Below are positions 4,153 through 64,000 of a stretch of 64,000 nt of DNA, in pieces. The DNA lies in sequence record NC_071039.1; one strand, 5' to 3'. Every line of letters starts with the position of its first letter. Position 1 is the first letter of the stretch. The position numbers and the translations under genes are program-made. The notes beneath the pieces were generated by a model. That model searched no databases and was not told the origin of the DNA. It was given only the letters and a program-made list of their open reading frames with translations.

Positions 4153-4587
4153 ATGTACGATAAAAATTTTGTATCAATGGATCAAATGCCAGTTATTGTC
4201 AGTGACTTGGTTAGTGAAATAGACGAAGCAGGAATTTCTCCTAAAGTTATTATTGCTATTAGCAAAGGTGGACTAATTCCTGCCACTATGATTAGCTATT
4301 ATTATGATTGCCCTATTGTAACATACGATCCGGTAGAAGATTGTTTTAGTACAAATAATGATATAAGTTCTGAATGCATTATCGTAGATGATGTTATCGA
4401 TACAGGCAATACTGTAAATTCTGTTATTTCTTTGTTAGAAGACGAATTCTTTTTTACAAAAGAAGACATTAGTAAAATTAGAGTAGCATCAATATTTGCA
4501 ACAAGAAATAATACAATTGTAGATTTTTATCATGACGAAATAAGTTACCATGATTCGGTAAGTTTTGAATTTAAACAATTTATTTAA
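4153..4587 (+). CDS. type I phosphoribosyltransferase (purine PRTase-like)
   Basis: IAISKGGLIPA and PRPP-binding IIVDDVIDTGNT motifs. Confidence 0.8.
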   Translation: MYDKNFVSMDQMPVIVSDLVSEIDEAGISPKVIIAISKGGLIPATMISYYYDCPIVTYDPVEDCFSTNNDISSECIIVDDVIDTGNTVNSVISLLEDEFFFTKEDISKIRVASIFATRNNTIVDFYHDEISYHDSVSFEFKQFI

Positions 4588-4657
4588 TATAAAGTTATTC
4601 TTTACTTTTAGTATGATTGCGTTTATAATGTATATTATAAAATAAAGCGGATTATGT

Positions 4658-5530
4658 ATGAAACACAGATATACTGAAAAGTTTTTCTCAGTCCAGGGAG
4701 AAAGCCTACATACCGGAAAACTATGCACTTGGCTTAGATTTTTCGGATGTTCGTTGCAATGTAGGGGCTTTGGACAAAAAGAACCTGGAAATCCCGAAAC
4801 ATGGGTAGAACAACGACCGGATTTAATAGATGTAACAAACATTACAGATTATAAACAATTACCGACTCCTAAGTATGGATGTGATTCAGACTATTCTGTA
4901 TTTGCTAAATTTAAACATCTTGCAACAGAAGTCGATCCTGTTGTAGTTGCAAATGAAATAAAACAATTAATTCCTAGTAAAACATTTGGTAAAAAAATAG
5001 GTCATGTATTTACGGGCGGAGAACCGTTAGTAAACCAAGAATCTATAGTAGATATAGTAAATTATTGGATAGATACTAATGATTATCCTGCATGGATAGG
5101 AATAGAAACAAATACAACTAGACCGTTAGAAAAATGCTTAATCGATTTAGTTAACAGATGTAAATCGATTGGTGTGCAATTTTATTTTTCTATGTCACCC
5201 AAACTACTTCATGTAGCAGGTGAACAACCCAAACGAGCTATCCATATAAATTTAATGAAGGAATATATAGATATTGCACCGGATAGCTATCTAAAATTTG
5301 TAGTAAATGAAGATCAGCGATCGTGGGATCAAGCAAAAAGTATAGTAGACACATTAAATGCTGACGGGTATTTACCAGATGTGTGGGTTATGCCAGTCGG
5401 AGGCATTTATTCCCAACAAACAGACCCAGTAATTGGAAGACTTGCAGATAAAGCTATCTTCGAATACGAATGGAATGTTAGTTTACGTGTTCACGTATTA
5501 ACCTGGGGTGACGATCAACTAGGTAGGTAA
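4658..5530 (+). CDS. queE: 7-carboxy-7-deazaguanine synthase (radical SAM)
   Basis: FFSVQGE, RFFGCSLQCRGF...GCDS (CxxxC..C split by an insertion), FTGGEPL, LKFVV, SLRVH. Confidence 0.9.
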   Translation: MKHRYTEKFFSVQGESLHTGKLCTWLRFFGCSLQCRGFGQKEPGNPETWVEQRPDLIDVTNITDYKQLPTPKYGCDSDYSVFAKFKHLATEVDPVVVANEIKQLIPSKTFGKKIGHVFTGGEPLVNQESIVDIVNYWIDTNDYPAWIGIETNTTRPLEKCLIDLVNRCKSIGVQFYFSMSPKLLHVAGEQPKRAIHINLMKEYIDIAPDSYLKFVVNEDQRSWDQAKSIVDTLNADGYLPDVWVMPVGGIYSQQTDPVIGRLADKAIFEYEWNVSLRVHVLTWGDDQLGR

Positions 5531-5534
5531 AACC

Positions 5535-5954
5535 ATGAACCGTATTATCCTTTCTGTAGTGTTTAGTTTAATATCGTCGTATGCAGTATGCGGAGAAAAT
5601 AAATCCTATATAAATCCGCATCTTCATGGAAAATGCGTCGGGATGGTTACTAAACTGTCTGAATATGCAAATACCGAAGTATTAACTTTAAAATTGTATA
5701 ATATAGGTCAGGTACTTCATGCATACGGCAAATACACTGCACTAAAATCGAATAATGCAGATACAGCACTGTATGATCAAGGATTAGTTGACGGAAGAGA
5801 AACAGTTTCTAAAAATATAGAAAATAACAATTTTAATGTTTTAGTAAAATATTATGAAGATAATTGTCTAGAAATATTTTACAAATCTGCAGACTGGTTA
5901 TATCATAATAACATACATCAGTTCAATAAATTAACGGATATTTTTAATAAATGA
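5535..5954 (+). CDS. hypothetical protein with signal-peptide-like N-terminus
   Basis: MNRIILSVVFSLISSYAVC hydrophobic leader. Confidence 0.55.
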   Translation: MNRIILSVVFSLISSYAVCGENKSYINPHLHGKCVGMVTKLSEYANTEVLTLKLYNIGQVLHAYGKYTALKSNNADTALYDQGLVDGRETVSKNIENNNFNVLVKYYEDNCLEIFYKSADWLYHNNIHQFNKLTDIFNK

Positions 5955-6562
5955 AAAAAAGATTATTTCCATTTTGGTTATGGCCATATAGCTGGGGATT
6001 ACCTGCTAAACAGAAAGCTATTGCAAAAGCAGAGTATTATCTCGAAGGAGAAGAATTAGATAGGGAATTAGTAGCACTATCGAATACAACAAGCAAAGCC
6101 AAAGAAATTGAATTGTTACATATTGATTTTAAATATGGTAAAATAACAGAATACGAATACGATGTTGCTTTAGCTAAAACTCAATACGATCCGGGTCTAG
6201 CTTTAGACTTAAAATTAGCTGATATAGATTTAAAGCATCATAAAATAAATGAAAGGGAACATAGCAAACGAATTGCTACCTTAAGAAAGTTACCTTGGGT
6301 AGATATAATAAAGATAGGCTTGTCTTCTTCTGATATTTCGACAGGAGAAATGGAATTAGACTGGAATGAATATTTTATAGAAGAATTGCACGAATACGGA
6401 TATGTAGGTAGGACTGACGAAGAAGTAGTAAATTTATGGTTATCTACTTTATGTAAAAATATCGCATTAGACGAATTCGGAGGAATGGGATCTGTAGACG
6501 ATCTTTCAGAAGATAATGACAAAATAGATAGCAAAGAAAACTATAAAAGGGAAGTTAAGTAA
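5951..6562 (+). CDS. conserved hypothetical jumbo-phage protein
   Basis: 203 aa with ELDWNEYFIEEL...GY.G..DEEVV..W motif; overlaps both neighbours. Confidence 0.65.
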   Translation: MKKRLFPFWLWPYSWGLPAKQKAIAKAEYYLEGEELDRELVALSNTTSKAKEIELLHIDFKYGKITEYEYDVALAKTQYDPGLALDLKLADIDLKHHKINEREHSKRIATLRKLPWVDIIKIGLSSSDISTGEMELDWNEYFIEELHEYGYVGRTDEEVVNLWLSTLCKNIALDEFGGMGSVDDLSEDNDKIDSKENYKREVK

Positions 6563-7548
6563 TGTCTAAAACTTATATTTTAATCGATACATTCAACATG
6601 TTTCATAGAGCAAAACATGTAATCAGGTCCTCCTCGTTAGATGAAAAAGTAGGCATGTGTCTTCATGTAATGTTTAACAGTATACGCAAAGTATACAGAG
6701 ACCATTCTGCAGATCATGCTGTGTTTTGCATAGAAGGCAAATCTTGGCGGAAGGACTTTTATAAAGAATATAAGTTCAACCGAACAGCAGCTAGAATGGC
6801 AAGAACAGAAGCTGAAATCGAAGAAGATGCTGCTTTAATGGAAGCATATAACGATTTAATTACATTCATTAATGATAAAACAAATTCTAGCGTACTACAT
6901 CACCATAAAGCAGAAGCAGATGATATGATAGCTACTTGGATTCAAAATAATCCAAATGATAATCATATTATTGTTAGTTCAGACAGCGATTTTTTCCAGC
7001 TATTAGCACCTAACGTTAAAATATATAATGGAATTACAGAACAACTAATTACATTAGAAGGTTTCTTTGATAATAAAGGCAAACCTGTAATTGATAATAA
7101 AACAAAGAAACCAAAAGTGGCTCCTGATCCTAAATGGTTATTATTTGAAAAATGCATTAGGGGAGATAAATCTGATTTTATTTTTGCGGCGTACCCGGGT
7201 GCAAGAGAAACTAGTTCTAAAAATAAAGTAGGCATGCGTGAAGTATTTGCCGATATGGATAATAAAGGTTACGCATGGAATAATTTTATGTTGACAAAAA
7301 TTACAGATTCTGCTGGTAATGAATTTGTTGTTCACGATAAGTACGAATTTAACAAAACACTAATTGACTTAACTTGTCAGCCAGATGATCTAAAAACAGA
7401 ATTTAAAACAGTCACAGATGTAGCTCGTAATAAACCGCCCGTATCTAACGTAGGCATCCATTTTTTAAAATTCTGTAATAGATGGGCACTAGAGCAAATC
7501 TCTAAATATCCAGACGAATTTGCAAAACTTCTTAATGCTAAACCATAA
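6562..7548 (+). CDS. rnh: T4-type RNase H / 5'-3' exonuclease (FEN-1 superfamily)
   Basis: LIDTFNMFH, EADDMIA, IVSSDSDFFQL and IRGDKSD acidic active-site motifs. Confidence 0.85.
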   Translation: MSKTYILIDTFNMFHRAKHVIRSSSLDEKVGMCLHVMFNSIRKVYRDHSADHAVFCIEGKSWRKDFYKEYKFNRTAARMARTEAEIEEDAALMEAYNDLITFINDKTNSSVLHHHKAEADDMIATWIQNNPNDNHIIVSSDSDFFQLLAPNVKIYNGITEQLITLEGFFDNKGKPVIDNKTKKPKVAPDPKWLLFEKCIRGDKSDFIFAAYPGARETSSKNKVGMREVFADMDNKGYAWNNFMLTKITDSAGNEFVVHDKYEFNKTLIDLTCQPDDLKTEFKTVTDVARNKPPVSNVGIHFLKFCNRWALEQISKYPDEFAKLLNAKP

Positions 7549-12479: not shown

Positions 12480-13745
12480 ATGAGAACACTAACTTCATCT
12501 TTGTTTGTCATTATAATGACATTAGTAAATATCCTTTCTGTAATATATATGTATGTTACTAATGTGCCATTAATTTATATGCTTGTTGCAGTTCCTAATC
12601 AGTGTGTTATATCATTAATTTCTTGTGTATACAGAAAAATCATAGCAGAATTTTTTTATATAAAGAGATTTAGTTTTTATAAACTAGAAGTCGTTTTAGA
12701 CAAGCAAAGAGGGAGCTCAACAAAATATATTTTAAAATTAAATGTATTAGGTGAAACATATTATTACGATTTTCATGACAATCCTTTTTGCTGTCTTCCT
12801 ATTTATGCGAATTTCTATACTAATTCAGAATCATTGGCACTTAACACATTCCAAAGGTATGAAGACCAAGCTGAGCTATATAAAAAGAGCAGCGCCATTA
12901 CTACTGTAATAAAATCTAGTAAAGGTACTAAGTAGTATGAGACTTCCGTTCAGTAACATATGTTTAATATTAGTACCTTTATTTGCTGTATTGATTACTA
13001 TATGTATTATTCTAGAATACCAAGAACATGTCGTACTGGCACTAGTAATAATACCTTTAATAGTATGTGTACTGTCTGTCAGTATATGCGGGATTGCGAT
13101 ATTGTTTTATTTGATGATTCTCTGCGAAATATCTGAAAATAAATATTTTACTTCATTCGAAATAGAAGCTATAAAAAGAAAAGGTAAACCTACATTATAT
13201 TTTATAAAAAAGATATGGCTGTCCGAAATATTTTATTTTAATATAAAACAAAATAGATTTTCTATAAGAAGACATATACATAGTTCGTATGATTCATTAG
13301 AAAAAGCACTAAAAGAAATAGAACATATATATAAACAATACACAGAGACAGAATATAATAAAGTTGTGTTTAAAAAAGGAAAAAAATTAATATGATCGTC
13401 AGCGAGATTATATATTCTATTTTCATAGCTGCATTAATAACAGTTATGACTATACTATATATAAGTCTCAGAATAATAACATGTAAGATATTAAATAAGT
13501 CATTAAAGATTTCAGCTAATGTAATTATATATGGTACCTCTAATATAGAATATGTATATATTCCTGAAATAAAATATAAATTTCTTTCTTTTAAAATAAC
13601 ACATTCTGGTTTAGTTATGTTTGACAAAGAGTTTGGATTTAGGACACTAAACGATGCTATAAATGCATTAAATATGTATGTAGACACCGATATTATAAAA
13701 ATAGTATATAAAAAGGTACCCACATTTTATACTTGGCACGAATAA
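12480..13745 (+). CDS. three tandem membrane-anchored proteins (12480-12935, 12937-13395, 13392-13745), probably paralogous
   Basis: Each has one or two N-terminal TM segments and a similar C-terminal helix (SESLAL, SLEKALKEI, TLNDAINAL). Confidence 0.55.
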
Positions 13746-17585: not shown

Positions 17586-17825
17586 TTAAAGCTTTTCTAA
17601 AACAAGTGTTAGCGCATCTTCTCCTATATTAAAGTGTTGTGTCGCACTAACATGACAAAACTTGCCATATATATCTAATGCAGATATTACAACATCTTCA
17701 ATAACTTTTTCTATCATTTCACTAGTATCTTTACATCTACATTTTAGTGTAATGTTATCCATAGTTTCTTCAATGGATATAATATTAATGCCCTTTACTT
17801 CTAAAGCTTCTTTTATTTCTTGCAT
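17586..17825 (-). CDS. hypothetical protein
   Basis: Start MQEIKE with GGAG SD just after the upstream stop. Confidence 0.55.
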   Translation of the reverse strand: MQEIKEALEVKGINIISIEETMDNITLKCRCKDTSEMIEKVIEDVVISALDIYGKFCHVSATQHFNIGEDALTLVLEKL

Positions 17826-17826
17826 T

Positions 17827-18567
17827 TTACTCCGCGCGAGTGGAATCGCGCTCAAGTTTTTGAGAAACCTTAAGTTCTAATTCCTCAACGGCCTTAGCTT
17901 TGCTTTCTTCTAGTAAAGCTCTAGCCTTTTCTTCTTCTCGTTTCTGCCTAGCTTCCCTGCGCTTTTCCTTACGTTTTTCTAGGCGCTCTTTGTAACGTTC
18001 TTCTAGTTCTTCTTCTGTAAGTTCACGCTGACGACCCGGAGCTGGTTTTAGTTCAGGACATAAAGAATATGCAAGCTCTAACTTTGCATCAGCCTCTTCT
18101 TTAAGTAACCGTGCTTGAACTATAAGACCTTCTGCTCGTTGTTTATCAGTAATAGATTCTTCAACTACAGGTACTGATGCGGTTTCTGTATGTACAGGGT
18201 CGGCACCTGCTAATGCAGCTTCACGTATCTGAGAATTAATAAGTTCTAAAGCAACATTAGTACCTGGGTACGGTTGCATAAAAACCTGTCTAACTTCCAC
18301 TTTGCGTAAAAAAGACCGATCGTGCATTGTACGAAGTGCAGGCAATCCGTCACCTAAAAGTTTATTATTTAGGACAGTATACAAATCGACAGAATTTTGT
18401 CCTTCTCTACTTTCAACTATAGTTTTTAGGTTATCTTGGTACATGTCTGGTAGTCTATCTATTTCAACTACTAAACAATGAGTAGGATCATCGGGTAATT
18501 CCCGGAACACGACATACACACGTGTTCCGGTATTAGCGATTTTCCCTATGTGGCGCTTAAGACTCAT
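17827..18567 (-). CDS. conserved hypothetical jumbo-phage protein with C-terminal coiled coil
   Basis: KRHIG...RVYVVFRELP...CLVV N-terminus; E/K/R-rich tail. Confidence 0.7.
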   Translation of the reverse strand: MSLKRHIGKIANTGTRVYVVFRELPDDPTHCLVVEIDRLPDMYQDNLKTIVESREGQNSVDLYTVLNNKLLGDGLPALRTMHDRSFLRKVEVRQVFMQPYPGTNVALELINSQIREAALAGADPVHTETASVPVVEESITDKQRAEGLIVQARLLKEEADAKLELAYSLCPELKPAPGRQRELTEEELEERYKERLEKRKEKRREARQKREEEKARALLEESKAKAVEELELKVSQKLERDSTRAE

Positions 18568-25005: not shown

Positions 25006-25442
25006 ATGGCAAACGTAATTAAAGAACTTCATCCTATTAAAGGATATTGCATAGTTGTGCGTCATCCAGGCGATACTAGATTTAGCTGGGTATCGCTAGA
25101 TAATCAATATATTTTGGTAGACAATCCAGTATTTTTAAATGATGAATTTGACAATTGTAAAAACGAATGGCCAGATGCTGAAATAAAAATAGTAGAAGTG
25201 TATGTTGTCCCGGAGAAGGTGTTATGAATGCTATATCCAAAATATCTCCGTCTAAATGTTACACTGTCGTAGTTACAGATAATAATTGGAAATCATGCAC
25301 GTGGATAAATTATAATGATTCTCCGGTTGTAGAATATGATATTTCTAAAATATCATCTATATTGGAATCTTGTAAGAAAAAGTTTGGCGATAGTAATGTA
25401 AAAGTAATGGAAATATATTTAGTACCGGAAAACTTTTTATGA
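25006..25442 (+). CDS. tandem paralog pair of small proteins (25006-25227, 25224-25442)
   Basis: Shared YxxVV...W and VxE[VI]Y[VL]VPE motifs. Confidence 0.65.
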
Positions 25443-37879: not shown

Positions 37880-37910
37880 ATAAAACAGGAGCATTAGGCT
37901 CCTGTTTTAT
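37880..37910. terminator. bidirectional terminator
   Basis: ATAAAACAGGAGC-ATTAG-GCTCCTGTTTTAT. Confidence 0.75.
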
Positions 37911-38646
37911 TTTTTGAAATTTTAGTCATTATAGTATTATATAAATCATATGCACGTTTGATTATACGTTTGTATGCTCTGGGGTTTTCATTTTTAAGAA
38001 ACATAATATAATTTATGTGTGCATTTTCTATAAATGCATTTATAAATTCTTCTTTTGTTAAGACAGTTCCTTTTTTGTATAAAAAACTAAATTGATCTAC
38101 AGTTTGTTCTAAAGCTTGACTTATTCTTGCATTTATTTCGTATGATTGTCTATAATATGTATCCGAAGATGCCGGATCGTATCTTTTTATTTTTTCATTC
38201 TTAAACGGTTGTCCTTTATTTTTATCTAGTGCATGCCTTAACTCATGTACTATAGTTGAAACTACACTCTTGTTATTACTAAAAGAATTACCGTAATAAT
38301 GAGTATAAACATATATCGTATTAGATACTAAGTTGTATTCTCCTTTCTTTGCACTGTGTTGTCCAGAAATGTCAAACACTACCTGAATATCTTTAAATTC
38401 ATTGTACAAATTATCGAATATATCATCGGGAATTATATTTTTTAAAACAACACTATAGGTATTTAACATTATTTCTATAGTAGGCCAATCGTAGTTTTTC
38501 AACAACAATTGATCTTCTATTTCTTCTCTGTGTTGTTTCAAATTGTTGAAATATGATACGGCGTTTGCTACACACATTTTCGCAATATTTTGAATAATCA
38601 GTTCTTCGTCTGAAGTTTCGATTAAATTAATTTCGTTTAGTCGCAC
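37894..38646 (-). CDS. zincin-like HEXXH metallopeptidase, predicted virion internal protein
   Basis: IVHELRHALD, YEINARI; leader MRLNEINLIE; late operon. Confidence 0.7.
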   Translation of the reverse strand: MRLNEINLIETSDEELIIQNIAKMCVANAVSYFNNLKQHREEIEDQLLLKNYDWPTIEIMLNTYSVVLKNIIPDDIFDNLYNEFKDIQVVFDISGQHSAKKGEYNLVSNTIYVYTHYYGNSFSNNKSVVSTIVHELRHALDKNKGQPFKNEKIKRYDPASSDTYYRQSYEINARISQALEQTVDQFSFLYKKGTVLTKEEFINAFIENAHINYIMFLKNENPRAYKRIIKRAYDLYNTIMTKISKNKTGA

Positions 38647-39316
38647 GATTTTCTGCCCTTTTCTTTAATGTAACATACAATTCGTAACATCTAGATACTA
38701 TTCGTTTCCATACTTTTGGATTTTCTTTCTTTAAGTATGTAAGCTGATGACCTTTTGCGAATTTTTCTATATTATCTAGAAACCATTCTTTGGATGGTAT
38801 TTCTTTTGAAGATCCCCAATACTGCAAAAATATAACCTTAAGATCATTTAATAATTCGGCTATTCTTGCATTTATTTCGTATTTTTGATTTAAATATTCT
38901 TTATGTTTATCTGAATTGTTTGTATGTTTATATAATAACGGATTACCCTTAGAACTATCTAATGCATGTTGTAATTCATGAACTAAGGTATTTGTGTATG
39001 TTATATCATTTTTATATGAATCTGGACCTATATCAAAAAGTGCTATGAGATTTTTGCCATCGGTTCTTTGAATAAAAGCACCGTTGTATTGTTCTGGATG
39101 CTCATTCGCATACGGACGTATTATTAAATCGGAAATATTATTTAAAACAGGATACTTATCAAAATATTCTTGTTTTATTAAATCTTTTAGTTTGTATGAA
39201 TTGTATATTTTATTTTCTGCATTCTTTTCTATAACAAACCATATTATTTTTGCAATAGTAGATAATATTATACTTTCGCTTGCCTTTTCCGTTAGATTAA
39301 ATTCTAAAATTTTCAT
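38627..39316 (-). CDS. zincin-like HEXXH metallopeptidase, paralog of the previous gene
   Basis: LVHELQHALD, YEINARI; leader MKILEFNLTE. Confidence 0.7.
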   Translation of the reverse strand: MKILEFNLTEKASESIILSTIAKIIWFVIEKNAENKIYNSYKLKDLIKQEYFDKYPVLNNISDLIIRPYANEHPEQYNGAFIQRTDGKNLIALFDIGPDSYKNDITYTNTLVHELQHALDSSKGNPLLYKHTNNSDKHKEYLNQKYEINARIAELLNDLKVIFLQYWGSSKEIPSKEWFLDNIEKFAKGHQLTYLKKENPKVWKRIVSRCYELYVTLKKRAENRATKRN

Positions 39317-42562: not shown

Positions 42563-43790
42563 ATGGTCTCTGTTAATATACCGTTAATTGTATCTAATAA
42601 AATATATAAAATGGAATTTGAATATGGCGGCAAGGATGATGTGTTATATTTGTGTATGTATAGTGACAAAAATACATATCTACATAATATAATAGTCAAC
42701 ACAGAATTCTCTATGCTTTTTGTTCAATGTATGGGTAAAACTATACCACTAGAATCGATATTATATATCCAGTCAAATATAAAAACAATAAGTGTGACTG
42801 ATGACTATGGCTGTATAACCCTACATAACGATACATTTTGTTTATGTACTGGATATTTTCAGGAAAAAGTTAAATTTTTTGCAGATTAAATATGAATGAA
42901 CAAATTATATTATGTTTCCAAGCATGCGTTAATAAATTTGCCTACTTAGGAAACCCAAAAATAAGATTATTTGGAATCGGTAAAAGTGTCAAGATATCTG
43001 CACGGAATTATAACAATATGGATATAGGTTCGTTTAACAGTAATATGAAATTTTTATTATATATCGATAGTATCCAAGATATTGGAATATATGATGAAAA
43101 TTTTATATTTTATATATCAATAAATTCAGACGAAATATCATTTTTGGGTTCTACAGGTACCGCACAAGTAGATACTGAACTCGGAATTACTATATTCTTT
43201 ACCCGCCCCAAAACATAATCTTAAATTATGATATTCATTGCACAGCGACTGTTACATAAAATAACATATAATAAAAATACAATACTGTTAGGTTGTTTTA
43301 ATAGTGGATATTTTTTAATTAATAGAAGAAGTGGTATTGGATTCTTATTTACAGATATATGTATGAAACGAATAAAATGCATTTATTTCATATTATATAT
43401 TTCGCGTAATACCAATACTATAGGCAAAGATGCAATCTATATTAAAGATTTAGAACTGTTAAGAGTAATGCACATACTTCGATGAATATAAATTTAATAC
43501 TGATACTTCAAAGATGTACGTCTGTAATAGGAGGATTCCAGCGCGGAGGCGCAACACTTATTCATATTTATAGTGATTTTAATTTATCTGCTATAATGAC
43601 GTTATACAAAAGAAGATGCAAATGCATTGTATTTACTGACATTTTGTTTAACAACATTAAAGCCGGTTCTATAGATATCATTATCTATATAAGTAAGAAT
43701 GCAAACCTAATACACTATAACTTTGCCTACATAGCTACATCTCGTACAGATGGAGTTTCTGTTCCTTTACACGATTTGACAGGAATATGA
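42563..43790 (+). CDS. four small ORFs of the diverged paralog family
   Basis: 42563-42889, 42892-43218, 43228-43485, 43482-43790; motifs ILYIQSNIKTI, FYISINSDEI, LYISRNTNTI, IYISKNANLI. Confidence 0.55.
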
Positions 43791-44557: not shown

Positions 44558-44774
44558 CATATAAAAGTATGCGTATAATTTGCACATATAACGCAATAAC
44601 GCAACAACAAACAAAACGTAATAAAAAATGTTGCAATAGCTTAAAAGTTTTAGTATAATAAGCACGTAACAACGCAATACAGTTTACAAACAAAACGTAA
44701 TAAAAAATGTTGCAATAGCTTAAAAGTTTTAGTATAATAAGCGTATAATGCAGCTTATATAACAAGTTAAAAAC
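44558..44774. repeat. GA/TC/GG/CC-free island D containing a 57 nt direct repeat
   Basis: 217 nt with none of the four dinucleotides; 44607-44663 is identical to 44686-44742. Confidence 0.85.
44631..44738 (+). promoter_or_regulatory. tandem duplicated sigma70 promoters for the tRNA cluster
   Basis: TTGCAA-17 nt-TATAAT at 44631-44659 and 44710-44738, each with an A-rich UP-like tract. Confidence 0.75.
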
Positions 44775-44851
44775 CCCTCGGTAGCTCAGTTGGTTAGAGC
44801 GCGCGACTCATAATCGCTAGGTCACTGGTTCGAATCCAGTTCGAGGGACCA
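44775..44851 (+). tRNA. tRNA-Ile2 (CAT anticodon, lysidine type)
   Basis: Cloverleaf with encoded CCA; anticodon arm GCGA-CTCATAA-TCGC as in bacterial tRNA-Ile2; A73. Confidence 0.85.
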
Positions 44852-44873
44852 ATTTTAAGATGTTGTGCTTTTA

Positions 44874-44958
44874 GCCCGAGTGGTGAAATTGGTAGACACA
44901 GGAGACTTAAAATCTCCCGCTTCGCAGCGTACCGGTTCGAGTCCGGTCTCGGGTACCA
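44874..44958 (+). tRNA. tRNA-Leu (TAA)
   Basis: GGAGA-CTTAAAA-TCTCC anticodon arm, long variable arm, CCA. Confidence 0.95.
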
Positions 44959-45255: not shown

Positions 45256-45332
45256 GGGACTTTAGCTCAGTTGGTTAGAGCGCGCGACTCATAATCGCTA
45301 GGTCACTGGTTCGAATCCAGTAAGTCCCACCA
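45256..45332 (+). tRNA. tRNA-Ile2 (CAT), second copy
   Basis: Positions 8-65 identical to the first copy; acceptor stem GGGACTT/AAGTCCC; CCA. Confidence 0.85.
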
Positions 45333-45382
45333 ATTTTTATATACAAATCAAACTATACTTAAACTATATAATGAATGAATAT

Positions 45383-45467
45383 GCCCGGTTGGTGAAATCG
45401 GTAGACACAGGAGACTTAAAATCTCCCGACGAAAGTCGTGCCAGTTCGAGTCTGGCACCGGGCACCA
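45383..45467 (+). tRNA. tRNA-Leu (TAA), second copy
   Basis: Same anticodon arm as the first copy, different acceptor and variable arms; CCA. Confidence 0.95.
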
Positions 45468-45693
45468 AACTCCTACAAAAGGAACATATTATAGTATGTT
45501 CCTTTTTTATTATGATATTTTTATTATGAATGAAATAATGCATATATCTGCCAACACATACGTAATAGAATATCGCGTATTAAACAAGTTAGTAGTCACT
45601 ATAAAAAATAATAGATCTTTCACATTATGGATACATTTTGATATCGGTGCATTTTCTATAGCATGGAAATACAATGCAATATAGAATTAAAAA

Positions 45694-45855
45694 ATGAAAT
45701 ACATTATTAATTTACAATACTCAACAGAAGTAATATATATGCCTTGTTTTAACATATTATCGCTATGCGATAATAGATCTGTTACTATCCTTTCTATTAC
45801 TATGATATTTAAGATAAGATACTATTTACATCCGATGTACCGTTATATTCTATAA
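45694..45855 (+). CDS. half-length member of the small paralog family (not in ORF track)
   Basis: MKYIINLQYSTEVI..., 53 aa. Confidence 0.45.
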   Translation: MKYIINLQYSTEVIYMPCFNILSLCDNRSVTILSITMIFKIRYYLHPMYRYIL

Positions 45856-46488: not shown

Positions 46489-47027
46489 ATTTTTAAAGAG
46501 TGTTGTGTTATGCAAACAATAAGATTTGACATAAGACTTCTTCGTTATAGTATGAAACAAGGTTTCTGCTGTATAGGTAAAGATATATTCGAAGTGTGCA
46601 GAAAAACTCGGATCAGTCCAGGTCAGCTAAACTTACGAAAAATTATATAGGACGAGTATTAATCGGAATTGATTCAAACTACAATCTGCACAATACCTGT
46701 TTAGTAGGATGGACTCACTATAAAAATATTATAGTATAAAAATTTATATTAATAATATGAATAGATGCAAAGAACATCTACAATACAGAACAATCAAAAA
46801 GCATACATTAACTTGTAGGAAATGCAAAGAGTTATCGTTACAAATAAAATTATTTTGGCTTCAACAACAAGCATTCAGTATTAGAACTGATACTAGCGGA
46901 ATATACATATTCGATAATAAATATAATTCTATTTACGTATACTCTGTGGCCTGGTATAATACAGAATTATACGGTAAAGGGACAATAATTTTAGAATAAA
47001 CATGTATATATAAGAGTACCTCAATTA

Positions 47028-52519: not shown

Positions 52520-53342
52520 ATCTATCATTATTATGTAAATTATCTAGAGTAGTTAGAAATAGTACAATCGTTGTTTCTATTGAATATTCTAATTTTTTTA
52601 TTTCCATTTTTAATAAAATATATAGTTTAATAAGAATTGACATTGTTTCTAATTTAGCTACATGTTGCTTACTACCAACTGTTATAAACCTATTATCGTT
52701 TTGTATAGAAGAAAGAAATGAAAATAAATCTAAAAAAGATAATAACACTAAACAAACTTAGTGAGATTATATTTAGAAAACAAATATAACCCGAATGTCT
52801 CTGAATTGCATTATAACGTATTAATAGATATAATATATTAAGAATCTAAGCAATAAATATTTGCATATAAGAAGGATTCTAATATGTCATATAATCCAAA
52901 TTTCAATACCTCTATTATAGGATTATCGTATAATTCTATAAAATTACATATAGTAGAACATGTACAAAAAGACATAAAAGGTAATACAGTTTACATTATA
53001 TCATTTGTAAATGATTTTGGATTTATTTTTGCTAAGGTAAAAACTAAATATGATCCTAAAACTGTCTTATAATGCACGCCAAATATGCATAGAACCAAGT
53101 ACCATATATACAACCATATATACATGTATATGGGTCCGGGGAGAAAAAGGGATAGTTTTGTATAGACGTATGATTTATGATACAAGATCGATGAGTATAG
53201 GTAATTATGATTATACAACTTATATTTCGCATGAAATAGGAGGCTTAGGCTGGACCAGTTATAAGAATTTAAAAAAATGCTAGATTTCGTTGTTATAAAA
53301 CAGTATACTAAACACTCGACACATTAACTAGCAGAGGTAAAC

Positions 53343-55326: not shown

Positions 55327-57414
55327 ATGAATACTATAATAACGCTAAGTGCTTTGCAGGAAACAATACAAAGAGACGAATGGTCAGACCGCTATCATTT
55401 TGTTATTAAAGATAGGTATGGTAGTGATATATTGTATTGTATAGAATACGAAAATTCATTACAGTCGTGGTTTATAGACTATACATATAACAATAGTTTG
55501 ATATACTTAGATATATTTAAAATTCAACTATTAACACAAAAAATATCATCTTATACTAGTAACAGAACAGTAGTAATATTATCGGACAGTATCTCGAATG
55601 TAATTTTATATTACGAAATAGCAAATGATAGTATTAGTAGTAAAAATTATTCATCCGAAATAGTATTAGCATAAATGAATGTATTTTAGCATAAGACCAT
55701 AACGCACCATTTGCATTTAAATTCCAAACTAAAAATGTAACTTCTTTATGTATATTCTTATTATTGCAATTCTAGTAAAATCTGTACAACTATTGCTGAG
55801 TTAGATGTACAGGACAAAGAACCGCAAAATGCTTGACTATCCATTCGTGTTGGGTTAATTTAACAAAATTATATAAGGTATTTTAAGTGTTTATCATTAA
55901 ATTACAAAGCAATTGTGACAAAATAGAAATAGATAACTCAAAATACAATTACGGGTTTTTTATTGTTAACTCAGAAAACATGAAAGTATTCCATTACAGT
56001 AACAAAGAATCGTCTTTGTATTCTATGTTTGCAAAAAATCTACATATCAATGTATTTTTGGTGTCTACCTTGTGTTGTATTATATGTTTCGACTATCCTA
56101 CTTTATACTTAGAAATGGAATCAAACCGTGCAGTAGCATTAGGTATAAATCCATGTTTCTTAAATATAGATATACAAGGTTCTCGGTTCCATAATTGGGA
56201 TCCGGTGTGTTTTGTATAAACATGTGATATAATTTGTGTTTAGTTATTTCTTAAATAAGGTATTGAAATGAAGGAAAACAATATACTAGAAATGCAAGCA
56301 GGATGCTCAAACGTAACTGTTATAGGTAACAGTGTTATAAGTATAGAAGGATTATATGACAAACCAACAAAAACATTAAACTTCTTTGTAAGATATAATT
56401 TAAACCATGATTCAGAGTACTTATCATACATTTACACATTTAAAAATGATATATGTGTACTGTCTTTATCTAGTAAATGTTTTATGATTAAAATGGCCTC
56501 AGAGATGTACTATAAAACCAGATCTGTATGTATTATTAATAATAAAGGAAACGGATTGTTATATAGTTACAAAAATCACACATGGGCTCGGACATGCATT
56601 CTAATATAGAAAAAATTTATTATATTTCTAAAAATACACGAAGTATAAAGGTAATGGACCATACAATTACTATATGGTCGTTATATATTTCACCTAATAT
56701 TACTATAATTTTATGGGCAACTAATTTAACTACAGGATTATGTACCTTAAAATATAAAAATGAATTCAAAATAGATTTATTTAAATTAGTCAATACAGTG
56801 TATTCTATAAAAAACAGATATAGAAACAGTACATATGTATTAGATGATATAATGCACAATACTATATGCTCTGTGGGTATATTAAGACCCCGTATTGCAG
56901 ATGAAGTATATTGCAGATATAGAATATCGTATGTTAGCTAGCATTACATATATTGTATCAATTACTGCTAGATGCACATCTATATATGAAGATGCGTATA
57001 GTGATTTCGTTATATTTTGTATAGCAGATGTATTTGGTAGTTATATAATTCAATATATGACAGAACGCAACAATAGGTTTATAGCTGTATATGAATATAC
57101 ATATTCTACAATATGATATGTCTGATTCAAGTATATTATGCAATATAACAAGATATTCGTATACAATAAGACTGAGTAATTATACATCGTTTCATTTTGT
57201 TATATCCGGAATGGGTAGGCCTATAACAAAAGTTGTATCCAGTATACTGTGTACTCCTATTCATATAATAGATGTGTGTAATGTTTCGCATCGTGCAAGA
57301 GATACGATTTTTTCGTACAATGACACCCAATTACGCAGTTCTTTGCATTTGTTTTCTATATCATTTTGGAAGTTAAAAGCATATACTATGATAAACGTAT
57401 CCTACATAATATGA
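55327..57414 (+). CDS. array of small diverged paralogs, first part
   Basis: 55327-55674, 55887-56219, 56268-56609, 56582-56941, 56895-57116, 57091-57414; hydrophobic-[QS]xx[TC]xx-hydrophobic motif in most. Confidence 0.5.
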
Positions 57415-57905
57415 TATTTCAAAAACCATTTATAGAATTAAATAGTATCCCAGATTACACTCATCCGGGCGGATTTGCATACCAACGAAAAAATCATATA
57501 CACGAAGGCGTAGACCTTTATTGTAAAAATAAAGAACCTGTGTTTACAATGTTATCGGGTAAAGTAGTTAATATAATAAAAGATTTTACAGGACCGGGCT
57601 GCGGAACACCTTGGTGGAATAAAACAAGTGCAATAGTAATAGAAGACGTATTCGGTGTATGGGTATACGGCGAAATATTAGTAGGAAATTGGGTTAACAT
57701 AGGAGATACTGTACCAGCTGGAACATGTATCGGCAGAGTAGAACAAGTGTTAAAAAAGAACAAAGGACGTCCTATGTCTATGCTTCACGTAGAACGATAT
57801 ACAAAAGGAACTACAAATTCTATTGGATTATGGCAATTAAATACTAGCAGACCTGAAAATTTATTAGATCCAACACCTTTGTTACGGCGTATCATAAATG
57901 AATAA
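57366..57905 (+). CDS. M23-family (LytM-like) metallopeptidase
   Basis: HIHEGVDLY (HxxxD), V..GD.V..G..IG.V, LHVE; start probably at 57411. Confidence 0.75.
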   Translation: MEVKSIYYDKRILHNMIFQKPFIELNSIPDYTHPGGFAYQRKNHIHEGVDLYCKNKEPVFTMLSGKVVNIIKDFTGPGCGTPWWNKTSAIVIEDVFGVWVYGEILVGNWVNIGDTVPAGTCIGRVEQVLKKNKGRPMSMLHVERYTKGTTNSIGLWQLNTSRPENLLDPTPLLRRIINE

Positions 57906-60900
57906 TATATTATATATTCAGAATTTTATAAGAAGTAGAAAATTAGTAGCAGAATACGGATGTATAGTTACCATTAATGATATTACAGGAGCTAGAGAAT
58001 TTACAGCATATCATCTCAATAACTGGCATAATTGTTCATTTATATCCTATAATAATTGCAGTATAGATATTATTGCATTATGTAACCATACACACACGAT
58101 AGCATATGGAGCAGATAATGCAAGTTTTATAATAAAAAATAATAACAGAAATATACTACTGTCAGTAGTTGGTACGAATATGACATATTCGTCTTGTTAT
58201 TCATCTTCTGTAATTATAAATATTTCTGTTTTATTATAAAATGAATTTAATATTTTGTATAGCTAGCATTGATAATATACAAATAGGTATAGACCGGTCA
58301 ATCGGACATATAAACAATATAATATATATTCGAACTAGCCCTTCTAATGATATAATCAAATATATAACAGAAATAAAATATGGTAAAACAGTATCACTTA
58401 TGTTAAATCTCGATATATCAGTATTTAAAGAATTATTTATTTTTATTTTGTCATGTAACTGTAAACACATTACTGAACTAAGAATATACAATAAAGTAGT
58501 ATTTTATTTTTATTCTGATAACAGAAGATCTTTAACAGATTTGTTATATTACATAGGTCAGTGACAGTACATTTACAGAAAAATATAATATCTTATGTAT
58601 TATTCATTATAAAACTCTGTTGTGTTATTAAGTGTTGTATGTTAGCGTACAAGTTAATTAAATGCGGAACACTAAATGGATATTATTCTTTTTATATCAA
58701 ATAATACATACTATATAGCATCAACGAGTAATAGCACATTCTTATTATACAGATTTGATCAAAAATGTATCTATATTGTAACAAAAAATCTTAATTCACA
58801 TCCGGTAGTGATAGACGACGGAAGTAATGGCTGGGGGACAATATATGAGATTCCCGCACTAGTTCAGTTTTACACAGATATTTTTAAATTTTCTGTGCAT
58901 CACGAGTTAATTCAAATATATGTGCTCACAAAAGTAGGTCAATTTTTCTCTAAGATTGTTGCTTACTAATATAATTGTACAATACATAGGTAATTTGATG
59001 GACAATATATTTTATATTTCGTACGAGATAGCTGTCCAGTGTTCTAATATAACTACATTTTATTTAATTAATAAACACAATAGAGTATTTTATGCAATAC
59101 GTTCAGCCGCAGGACACCCAATCGACATTTTCGATTTTGATTGGAAACAAAAAATCTTACTAACGTCTAAGTATTGTAATAAGCTTTTATTTATTATTGG
59201 TAGAGAAAAGATACAGGTAACTACTACTAAGTTAAAGATATTTTATTGTCTTAGTAACGTATCTGCTAAATCGTATCAAGTTACACTATGAATATCATAC
59301 CATTAATTTTAATTAGTGTATACTAGTTATTGTGACACTATTAAATATGTCAATTAGATAAAATAAATTATTAATGAAAAATCTATTTCCTACCGGATGC
59401 ATATTTAATATATTGGTATTATCTTATCACACATATGCAATATATATTGTATGTTACTCAGATTGTCGTGTTATTGCACTAAACAGTTATTATACATACT
59501 ATATACCTTTAAATGACTAAATTAATACTTACAATTTCTATTAATACCAAAAAGATATTATTATTAAATGATGTCGTGCATTTTCGAAATTATAATAAAG
59601 CGGTATACTTTATAAATTTTTTATCTAAAACTAAGTCATTAATTATTGTAGACGAGTTAATAACAGATAGTTTTATTATCTTTTATATAAGTAACAATTG
59701 TTCCGAAATTTATGTCACCCCCAGATATGCTTTTATATGTAATTTCAATGGGGTTGGGTTTTTAGATCATGACTAGTTGTGTTAATTAGGATAACTATAC
59801 TTAATGAAATATGATTTTATATTACATATAAGTAATAACACAAATTGTATTATATTCGACACAAGTATTACCTTTGTTGGCAATAAAGGTATATTCTTTT
59901 ATAAAATAATACCAATACACTTGCATGGTATGTATAATTTTCCTTATATAGATGACAGTTGGTTAAATTATATTTCATTACCTATAATTATACAATATTA
60001 TACAAATAAACTGGTATATTTACCGTCTATTATATTTTTTCGTCAAAATAAATCTAATATATCAGCAGATGCTGTATTTCGTACAAATATGTTATGAACG
60101 ATGAATTAATACTATTGTTAAGTAAAGAGACTTATATAACTTCATTTTCTCATAACTGTGTAGACTTGTTCAACGCTGCTGGAATCATATTTTATAGCAT
60201 ATCTATACCATACATGGGTTCCCGTGCTGCTAGCAGAATACATCATTTATATTTGTGTGCGTTTACACTATCTCCTTTTATAATACAATCGTTTTGCCGT
60301 GTAATATTCGATAATAAGTATACAATTTGTATAGCATATAACGGTACACTTATATGGAAAGGTCTTTACCAATAACTTTTTCAGTTGCTATAACATGCAC
60401 AATGTGCAATAATAAAAAACAATGTGCAGTTGTGAATAAAATATATGAATATTATCATTAACATTCAAGCATCAACATCCGAAATCTTCTTTGACACGGA
60501 CTGTATCACGTTAATAACGAGTTTAGGCGGTCATGTCCTTTCGATAAACCGAAGAACAGGAAAAGGCGCAGTTGTACTTCATAACATAAAGTTAGATTCC
60601 ATCTATCGTATTCTACTATTACAGCACGCAACTGCATCACTTGTTGTATGGGGTGCTATAGACATTAAAGTATCATTTAAAGATATAGACGATGAATACA
60701 TTTTCCTTGCTATAGGAAGAATACATTATCACGGCAAATGGATAAAATAATTCTGACTATGCATAAAATTTATTATGACGAAATTTTAGAAATATCTAAT
60801 AAAGCTAGATTAATTGTAATTTATTCTGGCATATGTTCTATATACGCAAAACCTTCTGTTTATTATAATGTAAATTATAACTTTTATAGTAATCCATTTG

Positions 60901-63644
60901 GTTTGTGGAATAGGGCAGTATTTATAGCATCTAAACAATGCGGGTACATAGCATTCACTGATAACCGGGTGCGTATATTAACTGATAAAAAAATAATGTG
61001 GTATTATCATTATCTATAAGGTATAGATCGAAAAATGGTATATAAAATACCGAACGACAAGTGTATGTTGTTAATATTTCTGAGTAGTATAGCTGATACT
61101 ATATCTATAGAAATCAGTTTTAGAAAAAGAATTAGAAAATGTTTGTACACACTAAAAATATACAAAGGTGATAACATTTGCATATTTATAAATGGCGTAC
61201 TATTATTTAAAAAAGTTATATGTAACGATATGATAATTCCTATATTGATACAATCAGTCACAAGATCAATAGCAATGCATAACGACTTCTTAGAAGTATT
61301 TTCTAACAAATATTATTTGACGTTATTTAGAAAACTGACATAGTCTTAAATGGGCAAAAATGCATGATTGTTATACTTCTTTCACACTTTACACGTGAAC
61401 TAAATGCAGAATTTAATGAATTAAAACTTACTGTACATGGTAAAAGATTAGCGCAAATATATCCGACAGCATACATAGATACTAACGTCTTATGCCATTA
61501 TATGCGTGAACTTGATTTCTTACTATTATACATTTCTAACAATGCAAAAACGATACAATTAGACTATTCACACAGAATAATATTATATCACTCTCCCATA
61601 CCGCACTATATTTAAAGAGATAAGTATGTGAACTATCATTTAAATAGTTGCTGTACAGAAACTACATTATTAAACTCTTTTTTAATAAGCAAGTTAATGT
61701 CTATCTAAACACTATGTGCAACCTACCATTTATTATATCAAATAATTCCTACACACTAACCTATGGACCAGGTAGAACGATGACAGGAGCAGGCATATAC
61801 ATTGCTAATATATACGGATTTGTGTTTCTATACTCAGTTGTTACTATTTCTAATTTTCAAATATGTTTTAGTATGCTTAACGAAATAGATCCTTTGTATT
61901 TGCAATACGAATGCGATTCAATAAAAACAATAAACACAAAAATGTATTATAGACTAAATGTCAATTCATTACTTAATACAATGTTATGTAAAGAATATTA
62001 TGAATTTAATACTTGAATTATTAAGAAACACTAGTAAAATCATACCGCTTGATGGTCTAAATGCTGCTAGATTTATTCTTGTAAATACCCATTATATAAA
62101 AATAGCATCTTTTTGTTTATCATTTTCTACATGGACCTGCCAGACATTCTTAAGAATAAACCAGTTTCAAATGTCAGAATCTACGTTAGTTATCATATCT
62201 AATAAAATAAAGAAGATCAAAAGAGTAAAAAAATCATACGCTTTAGTTTTTGACGAATCATATATTCTGTTGAAAATCAAATGATAATACATATCTCACA
62301 TTTAACACATATAATAAGTGTATATTCTAAATATATAATCGTTATTAATAAAACTAACGAAATTATACTTTGTCCCTACACATATAACCGAACTAAAATT
62401 TACATTAATAAATTATTACTAAATATCGATTTAATCTGTTATATTCAATATAAGACAGAAACTATTAGTTATCCCGTTGTAATTACCAATTTTCTATTGT
62501 ATCCATATCTTGTCAACAATACTTTGGTTATATAATTATGGATTTTATTTTCCTACTACAACATAACACTTCTATTATATTATATCGTAATAGTATTATA
62601 GAATTATACACAGAAGACGAAATGCCAGTAATAGACATAGATATAACAAATTCTATGTTCATATATCTAGGTATTTTTAATGACAAAACTGCAATACTCT
62701 ATCTACAACAAAATACACACAGTATACATATAGAATCATCAAATTCTTATTATATGATAAGAATGAGAAATATGTACCATAGAAACGTTTATTATATTAT
62801 AACACATGGATTATATTAAACTTATCTCCGCAGAAGTAAATCAAATTAAAAAATCCACCCATTCCGGCGGCACCCGCCACGGCTTAACACTATATAACGT
62901 ACATGACCAACCTATAATAGAAATAAAGATCCAAAAAATAATATCCCGTGCATATGTGCGTGCGAACTACGATAAGTTGTGTAATGAAACCTGCATTCTT
63001 CATATGCAAAGTCAAACAACTTCAATATCTACCACACGGAACTCACTAGTAATCTTCACTTCCCACTATATAGTTCACTCTATCATATGAACCTAATATA
63101 TACACTACAACATAAAACTAGATATATAACCCAATTTGATACTACTTATCGTTTAATTAACTCAGGTGGAAAAGGTTTTTATCTTATAACACGCAAGAAC
63201 AAAAAGACCATAGTAGACATAGACTATAATGCCTTTAATGATATTTTCGGTATATTACATTTACAGTCTAAAACACATATACTAAAACGTTCATATTACC
63301 TAATAAAAATATATGATGTATATACGGATTTAATATTTTTTTATATACCACCATACCCATAAATGAAATTTATTATAACATTACAATCATACACAACTAC
63401 AATACAGTTTCTAACTAATGATTTTATATTATATTCTGATAGAAATAGATTATTAGAATTAGGTATATACGATAACAAATTCAACTGTTACATACATATC
63501 AATAATTTTAATAATAACAATATAATCTTGTGTTATCTTCAGCATATAATTTATACAATACACATTCATCCCTTTATTTTATCGATGTGTAATAGTAATT
63601 GGTTATCAGTTAATACAAAATGTTATTCAAGAAGACTTTACTAA
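57898..63644 (+). CDS. array of about 19 small diverged paralogs (85-120 aa), including decayed members
   Basis: Tightly packed ORFs with a duplicated motif, e.g. MDFIFLLQHNTSI...ILYLQQNTHSI, MNLIYTLQHKTRY...ILHLQSKTHI, MKFIITLQSYTTTI...CYLQHIIYTI. Confidence 0.6.
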
Positions 63645-63659
63645 AGCAATGAAGATGAA

Positions 63660-64000
63660 TGATAGAAATCACTATAACACTATAACTAATGAGTGATAAT
63701 ACTAATAGACAGAAACTATAGTGTAACAACCAATGAGTGATAATACTAATACTGATAGATATAGCTATAGTGTACAAATAATGAGTGATACTAATAGAAG
63801 CTATAGTATACAAATAATGAGTGAATTATATAGTACATATTTCGGTGAATACTGATATAATACCAATAGATAGTGATACTGATAGATAGAAACTATAGTG
63901 ATACTAATAGATATCAATACTAATACTAATATTGATAGATAGCTATAGTGTACAAATAATGAGTGAAATAGGTAGTACATATTTCGGTGAACCCTAACAT
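63660..64000. repeat. imperfect multi-unit repeat tract running off the window edge
   Basis: AATGAGTGA x5, CTATAGT x5, GCTATAGTGTACAAATAATGAGTGA x2 exact, TAGTACATATTTCGGTGAA x2 exact. Confidence 0.8.

Follow-up and report, generated by a model that had tools for sequence, protein, structure and literature searches.

The terminal 64 kb of the record of Pseudomonas phage vB_PaeM_PA5oct (PA5oct), a stretch of 64,000 nucleotides referred to here as the window, includes at 55327–63644 the window-side half of an array of approximately 16 kb, in which the genes for a lineage-specific family of small proteins of this jumbo phage are found on one strand. The array is positioned across the left boundary of the terminal repeat. 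The family comprises 42–58 members, which make up about a tenth of the PA5oct genes. Tandem duplication enlarges the family and its members diverge rapidly, yet their reading frames are kept open by selection, which also preserves a short motif and the core positions of the proteins. An early host-interaction or anti-defence role is plausible but unproven, the support for it being circumstantial.

Location and extent of the array

Base 64000 of the window is the final base of the 286,783-bp record, and 55327–63644 corresponds to 278110–286427 of MK797984.1/NC_071039.1 at 100% identity (megablast). Nine named relatives were 95.1–96.1% identical over this interval and 98.6–99.5% identical over a control stretch of core genes. 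The interval has a G+C content of 26–30%, with the lowest values of the window (25–29%), and carries 26 annotated genes, one encoding an M23 peptidase and 25 representing candidate family open reading frames (ORFs).

According to the PA5oct record and the accompanying paper, record positions 1–39080 form a direct terminal repeat of 39,080 bp, which contains 105 genes, many of them highly transcribed early (PMC7318152). The array does not stop at 63644; it resumes at record position 408 and extends to approximately 7050, inside the terminal repeat. The differently permuted records of Callisto, MIJ3, Cassandra and Paride show the array as one contiguous block. Its single non-coding gap is made up of iterated repeats with units of 60 and 37 nucleotides in PA5oct and of 43, 21 and 36 nucleotides in Callisto, and the copy numbers of these repeats vary among strains. 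The gap and the corresponding stretches in the loci of relatives are:

63645–64000, continuing in record 1–407 (approximately 760 bp in total), no strand: non-coding gap with degenerate iterated repeats, interrupting the array where the terminal repeat begins
17700–18350 in locus L003, 17360–18060 in L005 and 17755–18119 in L016: corresponding gap stretches in relatives

The repeat-filled gap could hold terminus, packaging or origin signals. In the Paride record, this stretch is annotated as 'CRISPR', which looks like an automatic mislabel because the repeats are imperfect.

A motif specific to the array

The motif that the original prediction had reported for the small proteins, searched for here as hydrophobic-x-hydrophobic-[QS]-x-x-[TAC]-x-x-hydrophobic, proved to be real, with an array-specific density and an in-frame position. 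Its density on the + strand of the array was 4–6 times that of anywhere else in the genome. On the + strand, the two 4-kb bins that cover 56001–64000 contained 12 and 21 matches, against about 2.8 elsewhere in the window. Across the whole genome, four array bins held 11–16 matches each per 4 kb (+ strand), while the remaining 140 bins of 4 kb, counted on both strands, held 2.65 ± 1.82 with a maximum of 8. The AT-rich relative phage 121Q (33–34% G+C) gave 1.7–3.0 matches per 4 kb.

In the frame of the ORFs, matches were found at residues 3–17 (around residue 5) and again at residues 52–70 of ORFs of 85–120 amino acids (aa), and in these full members the second copy lies approximately 53 columns after the first. 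The conserved motif spans about 13 residues. Shorter members of 40–62 aa have one copy and resemble the N-terminal half. Serine in the motif is encoded by both TCN and AGY codons and threonine by all four ACN codons, with the information confined to codon positions 1 and 2 and almost none in the third positions. This degenerate codon use places the motif signal at the protein level, and no DNA repeats were found within the array.

The two halves of the full-size members matched each other (mean z 4.1 and 2.3 against shuffles), via the motif only; once it was removed, no similarity between the halves was detectable (mean z 0.3 and 0.0 against shuffles). The duplicated unit of approximately 50 aa that had been proposed thus stands for the motif of about 13 residues and for a predicted helix-then-strands pattern, described below, but not for the remaining sequence.

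Census of the family

A family hidden Markov model (HMM) built from 12 two-motif seeds was iterated against the real ORFs together with 7240 shuffled decoys at E≤0.02. Round one added 14 real ORFs and none of the 7240 decoys, and at convergence the profile had collected 42 real ORFs, all on the + strand, and three decoys. Run on a fresh whole-genome ORF set in which decoys outnumbered real ORFs five to one, it recovered 42 real ORFs and none of the 7655 decoys at E≤0.02; relaxing the threshold to E≤1 gave 61 real ORFs and 13 decoys. A separate iteration with a unit-level HMM collected 28 proteins with 39 domains and no decoys. Each of the real matches at E≤0.02 belonged to the array, the initial 7 kb of the repeat, the tRNA zone or, for two of them, a site deeper in the repeat, and the whole-genome census found no family members in the other 226 kb or so of the genome or on the minus strand. 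At the same profile threshold, 36 members were found in the contiguous block of approximately 16 kb in the differently permuted relatives.

The E-values of the members are inflated because the same members trained the profile, and the evidence therefore rests on the decoy counts and on the untouched parts of the genome. All-versus-all phmmer comparison of single sequences gave few pairs, with E about 1e-4 at best and no better than some spurious pairs, and a loose iteration from two seeds drew in decoys; multi-seed profiles with explicit decoy counts were used instead.

Within 55327–63644, where more than 25 paralogs had been predicted, 19 of the 25 candidates were supported, three were marginal (E 0.1–0.3) and three had no family signal. 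The family nevertheless exceeds this count because the array runs on into record 1–7050. The repeat-side half of the array includes 21 ORFs of 40–62 aa. When 23 ORFs of this size were called mechanically in that half, eight scored at least 8 bits with the unit profile, and seven of the eight were like the N-terminal unit. Three of the four ORFs in the outlying group at 42563–43790 were supported by the HMM, as anticipated. The half-unit that had been placed at 45694–45855 and the other short pieces were not (E 0.3–4), while the adjacent ORF at 45496–45684 was.

Family members and associated ORFs, with window coordinates and strand, are:

42563–42889, +: member, an EST35 coding sequence, 108 aa, in the outlying cluster upstream of the tRNA genes; HMM E 3.8e-14 after inclusion, phmmer E 3e-4 to 57898–58239
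42892–43218, +: probable member, 108 aa; marginal HMM E 0.84, phmmer E 0.009 to 63363–63644, both motifs in the family alignment
43228–43485, +: member, 85 aa; HMM E 3.3e-11, in-frame motif at 43393
43482–43790, +: member, 102 aa; HMM E 6.1e-12, motifs at 43500 and 43683
45496–45684, +: single-unit member, 62 aa, among the tRNA genes; HMM E 1.6e-5, motif at 45538
46757–46999, +: possible member, 80 aa; unit HMM 2e-9 after iteration, full-length HMM E 0.43
53050–53283, +: possible member, 77 aa; unit HMM 1e-6 after iteration, full-length HMM E 0.59
55327–55674, +: member EST35_0435, 115 aa, first gene of the main array; HMM E 9.8e-13, second motif at residue 64
55887–56219, +: member EST35_0436, 110 aa; HMM E 8.8e-11
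56268–56609, +: member EST35_0437, 113 aa, the most constrained; motifs at residues 7 and 65, ratio of nonsynonymous to synonymous substitution rates (dN/dS) 0.04
56582–56941, +: marginal ORF EST35_0438, 119 aa; HMM E 0.11, motif at residue 13
56901–57414, +: EST35_0439 and EST35_0440, overlapping annotated ORFs with no family signal; HMM E >1.8 or no match listed
57411–57905, +: M23 peptidase gp441, by annotation, a non-member embedded in the array; internal control
57898–58239, +: member EST35_0442, 113 aa; HMM E 3.2e-15, dN/dS about 2 on few changes
58241–58564, +: annotated ORF EST35_0443, 107 aa, without family support; one match to the motif expression at residue 68, no HMM match below E 5
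58676–58969, +: member EST35_0444, 97 aa; HMM E 1.7e-8, phmmer E 6e-4 to 59804–60097
58998–59291, +: member EST35_0445, 97 aa; HMM E 3.1e-9, scored on the ORF from 58956
59374–59520, +: marginal short ORF EST35_0446, 48 aa; HMM E 0.27, motif at residue 14
59513–59776, +: member EST35_0447, 87 aa; motifs at residues 6 and 57, HMM E 1.1e-13
59804–60097, +: member EST35_0448, 97 aa; motifs at residues 7 and 61, HMM E 9.8e-16
60094–60375, +: member EST35_0449, 93 aa, start overlapping the preceding stop; HMM E 3e-15
60445–60750, +: member gp450 (EST35_0450), 101 aa; motifs at residues 5 and 57, published expression (PMC7318152), AlphaFold2 (AF2) model
60738–61019, +: marginal ORF EST35_0451, 93 aa; HMM E 0.29, motif at residue 17
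61035–61343, +: member EST35_0452, 102 aa; motifs at residues 14 and 70, HMM E 3.6e-7
61364–61615, +: member EST35_0453, 83 aa; motifs at residues 4 and 55, HMM E 1.2e-9
61780–62016, +: member EST35_0454, ORF open from 61648; HMM E 3.9e-8 on the 122-aa ORF
61958–62284, +: member EST35_0455, 108 aa; HMM E 6.5e-11, no Pfam match
62281–62535, +: member gp456, 84 aa, PA5oct allele unusually divergent; motifs at residues 3 and 53
62538–62819, +: member gp457, 93 aa, tandem duplicate in some strains; AF2 model, top Foldseek match the T4 MotA C-terminal domain
62806–63090, +: member EST35_0458, 94 aa; HMM E 1.2e-13
63087–63362, +: member EST35_0459, 91 aa; motifs at residues 5 and 57, phmmer E 1e-4 to gp457
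63363–63644, +: member EST35_0460, 93 aa, final array gene in the window; HMM E 2.7e-12

The name given to EST35_0455 in the record, 'CLIP-associating protein 1', was not supported by Pfam or the other libraries. Three overlapping annotated ORFs occupy three frames at 56582–57414. In EST35_0439 and EST35_0440, the substitutions seen against relatives concentrate at codon position 2 of the annotated frames, which makes the annotation of these frames doubtful, and the stretch represents either a doubtful annotation or a decayed member.

Coding status and selection

The + strand of the interval contains approximately 24 ORFs of at least 80 aa and the − strand two. Many starts abut or overlap the preceding stop, and Shine-Dalgarno matches of at least 4 nucleotides precede 18 of 60 genes versus a background of 8.6%.

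Comparison of the 23 window members with Callisto, MIJ3 and Cassandra gave a pooled dN/dS of 0.52–0.55, against 0.08–0.14 for seven adjoining non-family genes including gp441. The dN of the array was 6–9 times that of these neighbours, whose dN was only 0.003–0.006, at similar dS. The embedded M23 peptidase gp441, which the PA5oct paper lists as undetected in virions (PMC7318152), is tightly constrained within the fast-evolving array, with 2, 0 and 12 substitutions by codon position and a dN/dS of 0.06. Repeat-side members gave a dN/dS of 0.34–0.50, and the range across gene sets was 0.34–0.57. Synonymous changes were in excess in the 23 window members (70.5 of 228 versus 45.8 expected, chi-square about 16.7). 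Substitutions were almost even across codon positions. On the repeat side, 19–20 of the 21 small ORFs were intact and colinear in each relative.

The columns that are conserved among paralogs were also protected between strains, with nonsynonymous change in 4.7% versus 9.3% in other columns (Fisher 4e-10, Spearman −0.45) and an equal synonymous rate of 3.5% in both. This indicates that the alignment is meaningful and that the proteins are under selection now. The least conserved columns had a dN/dS of about 0.65. The description of the genes as hyper-diverged paralogs on one small shared scaffold is supported, and they evolve much faster than their neighbours.

Duplication and strain variation

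In Callisto, an extra member of 99 aa is found directly upstream of the gp457 ortholog, with 67% protein and 83.5% DNA identity to gp457. Paride carries the same gene, and in these two strains the extra copy is 66–67% identical to gp457. It was not found in PA5oct, MIJ3 or Cassandra, and its presence in only two of the five strains compared bears out the expansion that had been predicted, here by tandem duplication. Match lengths suggest that Deifobo and Ettore also have the extra copy and that PAC2, 30-2 and 30-3 are without it. Between the extra copy in Callisto and gp457, dN/dS was about 2 on 42 substitutions, which was not significant.

The median protein identity of members between strains was 94–95%, with single alleles at 66–84%. 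The gp456 protein of PA5oct was only 70–77% identical to its orthologs in all five relatives examined, which points to replacement of the allele or to a spell of rapid change in PA5oct.

Predicted fold

AF2 models were obtained for two members, gp457 from 16 paralogs (predicted local distance difference test score, pLDDT, 74; predicted template modelling score, pTM, 0.61) and gp450 from 34 sequences (pLDDT 65); both are of moderate confidence and built from paralogs only. The gp457 model has a helix at residues 2–10, four strands, a helix at residues 50–59 and two strands, and the gp450 model has the same order with a third helix, giving three helices and six strands. The motif in the gp457 model is a helix-strand element at pLDDT 83–94, and the agreement of the two models suggests that each motif covers the last part of a helix and the first part of a strand. 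A check for a shared fold by AlphaFold, as had been suggested, gave the same order of elements in the two independent models. The fold had been expected to be beta-rich; this was borne out only in part, the first part of each motif lying in a helix in both models.

A Foldseek search with the gp457 model placed the C-terminal domain of T4 MotA (1kaf, 5jlt) at ranks 1–4 and 6–8, with probability 0.72–0.97, E 0.05–0.3 and template modelling (TM) scores of 0.39–0.48 over approximately 85 columns. MotA orthologs in BFVD had a TM score of about 0.45 to the same model, and the best of these neighbours across PDB and BFVD reached TM scores of 0.44–0.48. The MotA domain is a saddle-shaped double wing with three helices interspersed with six strands (PMC2988021). 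Homology to MotA was, however, rejected at the sequence level. PF09158 (MotCF), which true MotA homologs do carry, matched 0 of the 28 or 16 members scanned, even at E≤10, and hhalign of 32 members against 82 MotA homologs plus T4 gave a probability of 0.3% and a score of 11.2, within the range of 5.4–12.4 for 20 column-shuffled controls. No Pfam domain corresponding to the activation domain (PF09114) was found in the members of 40–120 aa, and neither MotA nor AsiA appears by name in the PA5oct annotation tables. With no sequence support, the double wing is treated as a structural lead and not as membership. The proteins appear to share a small two-part alpha/beta scaffold that is possibly like the double wing of the MotA C-terminal domain, and single-unit members may pair to form the two-unit fold.

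Searches for relatives outside the group

No consistent multi-member match was found in Pfam (strict and at E≤10), PHROGs, NCBIfam, PADLOC or the PDB sequences. Matches in curated libraries were scattered and single-member (E 0.004–0.2), and a resemblance between the motif and polo box strands of PLK1 (E=2) was set aside as insignificant. The family had been described as unrecognised, and the library searches likewise revealed no known family. A tblastn search with gp457 against 50,697 phage records retrieved only the 11 records of the PA5oct group.

When 1.84 billion representatives were searched exhaustively with profiles, the sole matches were the PA5oct-group clusters of the queries themselves and one unrelated protein, but the search missed even the family's own repeat paralogs, so that an absence of outside relatives is weakly supported by it. 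The unrelated protein (P0016) is a metagenomic protein of 340 aa that matched by the motif alone. It has five tandem repeats, and its first helix-like stretch resembles the array motif. Scans of IMG/VR and JGI metagenomes anchored on the embedded M23 peptidase found nothing. In phage 121Q, 95 kb was examined, from 30 to 125 kb downstream of its RNase H gene, which mirrors the position of the array in PA5oct and where synteny was expected; tRNA genes and runs of small genes were present there and family members were not. A term search of papers on PA5oct, MIJ3, Paride and Callisto and of a review of jumbo phages gave no mention of such a gene family.

A possible early role and its alternatives

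PA5oct belongs to a T4-related lineage (PMC7318152, PMC11079468). It is sensitive to rifampicin and depends on the host RNA polymerase, the Watson strand yields nearly all of its early transcripts, and gp450 is reported to be highly transcribed early, at 5 min (PMC7318152). In the terminal repeat, outside the array, gp52 is a validated inhibitor of END nucleases and an anti-defence gene (PMC12191111). We propose that the family proteins would be cytoplasmic products of genes that the host RNA polymerase transcribes from the Watson strand ahead of replication. The scaffold core would be fixed and the surface free to vary, each paralog would have its own host or defence component to bind, and the array would constitute a diversified takeover or counter-defence toolkit. 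The isoelectric points (pI) of 60 members span 4.4 to 10.4, a spread more in keeping with varied targets than with a single common ligand. Taken as a whole, a fast-evolving family of early host-takeover or counter-defence binders is our best explanation, and we judge its chances to be about even.

Several points weigh against it. Among the members, stated expression is limited to gp450, and the strongly early genes of the repeat are listed as gp34–105 and not gp2–33 (PMC7318152). No consensus sigma-70 promoter (TTGAC-N15-19-TAWAAT) was found at 55–64 kb, and the majority of the genes have no recognisable ribosome-binding site. Two in-frame stops per relative were found across the 23 window genes, and only 16–18 of the 23 were fully colinear in each relative, both of which fit partial decay. 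Apart from a handful of genes with few changes, dN/dS stayed below 1, which does not demonstrate positive selection. To these can be added the moderate confidence of the models, Foldseek E-values of 0.05–0.5 and the failure of the exhaustive search to recover the repeat paralogs, while the function and targets of the members are matters that we can only infer.

Scans for promoters and terminators showed no enrichment. The 69-bp spacer upstream of gp450 (60376–60444) contains only weak promoter-like hexamers (9 of 12 matches) and the string 'CAATGTGCA' twice.

The same observations could be explained if the family were real but mostly idle, a tolerated, weakly expressed by-product of repeated unequal recombination beside the terminal repeat that is drifting towards decay under relaxed constraint, a gene nursery or graveyard in which few members, if any, would have a specific task. 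A dN/dS of about 0.5 overall and about 0.65 in the variable columns, together with a duplicate pair that departs from neutrality without significance, means that relaxed constraint accounts for the rates no less well than positive selection. The arms race or anti-defence role that had been predicted is consequently not shown by rates that pool at about 0.5 (0.34–0.57). The near-even spread of substitutions over codon positions, the in-frame stops, the five to seven of 23 window genes that are not colinear, the three ORFs without family signal (two of them with frame-inconsistent substitutions), the lack of consensus promoters, the few ribosome-binding sites and the differing gene content of near-identical strains all favour idleness. 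Against it, the long ORFs are open on one strand only, in stop-rich DNA, the synonymous excess is significant, the core columns shared by paralogs are still protected, nearly all of the tiny repeat-side ORFs are intact in every relative examined and one member is among the most transcribed early genes (PMC7318152). We consider an idle family, the main rival reading, rather unlikely.

The members might instead be stand-alone, MotA-like double-wing domains that bind DNA, as sequence-specific regulators or as DNA-coating proteins, and not host proteins. The MotA C-terminal domains are the top structural neighbours in both PDB and BFVD, the gp450 model has the three helices and six strands described for the domain (PMC2988021), and the T4-related lineage relies on host RNA polymerase (PMC7318152, PMC11079468). 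However, the profile comparisons with MotA described above were negative, the TM scores are below 0.5, and the members have no activation domain, with no MotA or AsiA annotated in the genome. They also have no shared basic character; with a pI below 6 in 17 of the 60, the wide range argues against a shared DNA-binding surface. A DNA-binding role would thus be quite improbable.

A conserved motif of about 10 residues right after the start codon of otherwise variable small proteins, in a T4-related lineage, would also be expected if the motif were a targeting peptide and the proteins were packed in the capsid and delivered with the DNA, like T4-type internal proteins. But the note in the record that marks virion proteins found in ESI-MS/MS (tandem mass spectrometry with electrospray ionization) is on no array gene, while it is on other small genes of the repeat (gp38, gp48 and gp51). 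In addition, the motif recurs mid-protein and is modelled as an integral helix-strand element, and the gp450 transcript is early and not late, which leaves capsid delivery very improbable.

An artefact of chance ORFs and a composition-driven motif in AT-rich DNA, or of a DNA repeat read as protein, to which the low G+C content and the weak pairwise protein E-values (1e-4 at best) might point, deserves next to no credence and is refuted by controls that lack the signal, namely the shuffled decoys, the minus strand, the remaining 226 kb or so of the genome and phage 121Q with its AT-rich DNA, as well as by the degenerate codon use at the motif, the lack of DNA repeats and the selection on the reading frame.

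Other features of the window

Three further pairs of adjacent paralogs were seen in the window. They are at 37894–38646 and 38627–39316 on the − strand (phmmer E 4e-20), which encode virion structural proteins, at 25006–25227 and 25224–25442 (phmmer E 2e-9) and at 12480–12935 and 12937–13395 (phmmer E 2e-7). A tRNA-Met/tRNA-Leu pair is found twice, at 44775–44958 and 45256–45467, approximately 480 bp apart, suggesting a segmental duplication within the tRNA cluster. A 79-nucleotide tandem repeat (2.3 copies) is located just upstream of this cluster at 44562–44742. An Rfam scan found only the 12 tRNAs.

Significance and comparison with known systems

PA5oct, Paride, Callisto and MIJ3 are jumbo phages that serve as models and as candidates for therapy, and most of their genes are without an assigned function. 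About 16 kb of PA5oct is here assigned to a single family for which the motif is defined, the fold can be tested and the evolutionary dynamics can be measured. A multigene family of such size is unusual in phages, and this one is a clean case for the birth, halving and diversification of small proteins. Because of its position at the repeat boundary and its strain-variable copies, a search for host-takeover or counter-defence functions could naturally start here. It is conceivable, though in our view unlikely, that a MotA-like double wing has been amplified to about 50 fast-diverging copies, including half-domain dimers, as an early panel of binders against the host or its defences. If so, the array would parallel, in a phage, the terminal multigene families known from giant viruses of eukaryotes, and the scaffold would be a new class for anti-defence proteins. 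To our knowledge, the double-wing fold has been described only for MotA and bacterial YjbR-type proteins, beyond which it would be extended if the likeness holds.

Host-takeover clusters in phage terminal repeats include the T5 pre-early genes and the terminal-repeat genes of Staphylococcus Kayvirus. The host-takeover modules of the type found in Bacillus phage SPO1 are another case and, like the PA5oct array, consist of dozens of small, packed, same-strand genes of unknown fold at a long terminal repeat (PMC6873191, PMC10531801), in a region transcribed first by the host RNA polymerase, as is probable for PA5oct (PMC7318152). With the array at record 278110–286427 and 408–7050 and the repeat at 1–39080, PA5oct has a terminal-repeat cluster of this kind. 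However, the genes of the SPO1-type modules are unrelated to each other, while the PA5oct array is made up mostly of paralogs of one family and extends across the edge of the repeat, and its window part yielded no strong early promoters.

The C-terminal domain of T4 MotA (1kaf, 5jlt; PF09158) is the best structural neighbour of the gp457 model and resembles the predicted structures in its size of approximately 105 aa and its helices and six strands; both occur in T4-related phages. The family differs in having no sequence or profile similarity to it, no N-terminal activation domain and no conserved basic surface, and MotA is single-copy whereas the PA5oct family is amplified about 50-fold.

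The hypervariable loci of T4-type phages, namely the internal-protein locus and the 'hyperplastic regions', are also clusters of small, fast-changing, strain-variable genes. Some of these genes share only a short N-terminal motif, and the loci are thought to serve host adaptation and anti-restriction. In contrast, the PA5oct members were not seen in the virion, their motif is also internal and the family is far larger.

Tandem amplification and divergence near the genome ends are characteristic of the terminal multigene families of large DNA viruses of eukaryotes and of the 'genomic accordion' of poxviruses. These families differ from the PA5oct array, which belongs to a bacterial virus, encodes much smaller proteins with a different fold and has no demonstrated link to defence, but they share with it a copy number that varies between close strains.

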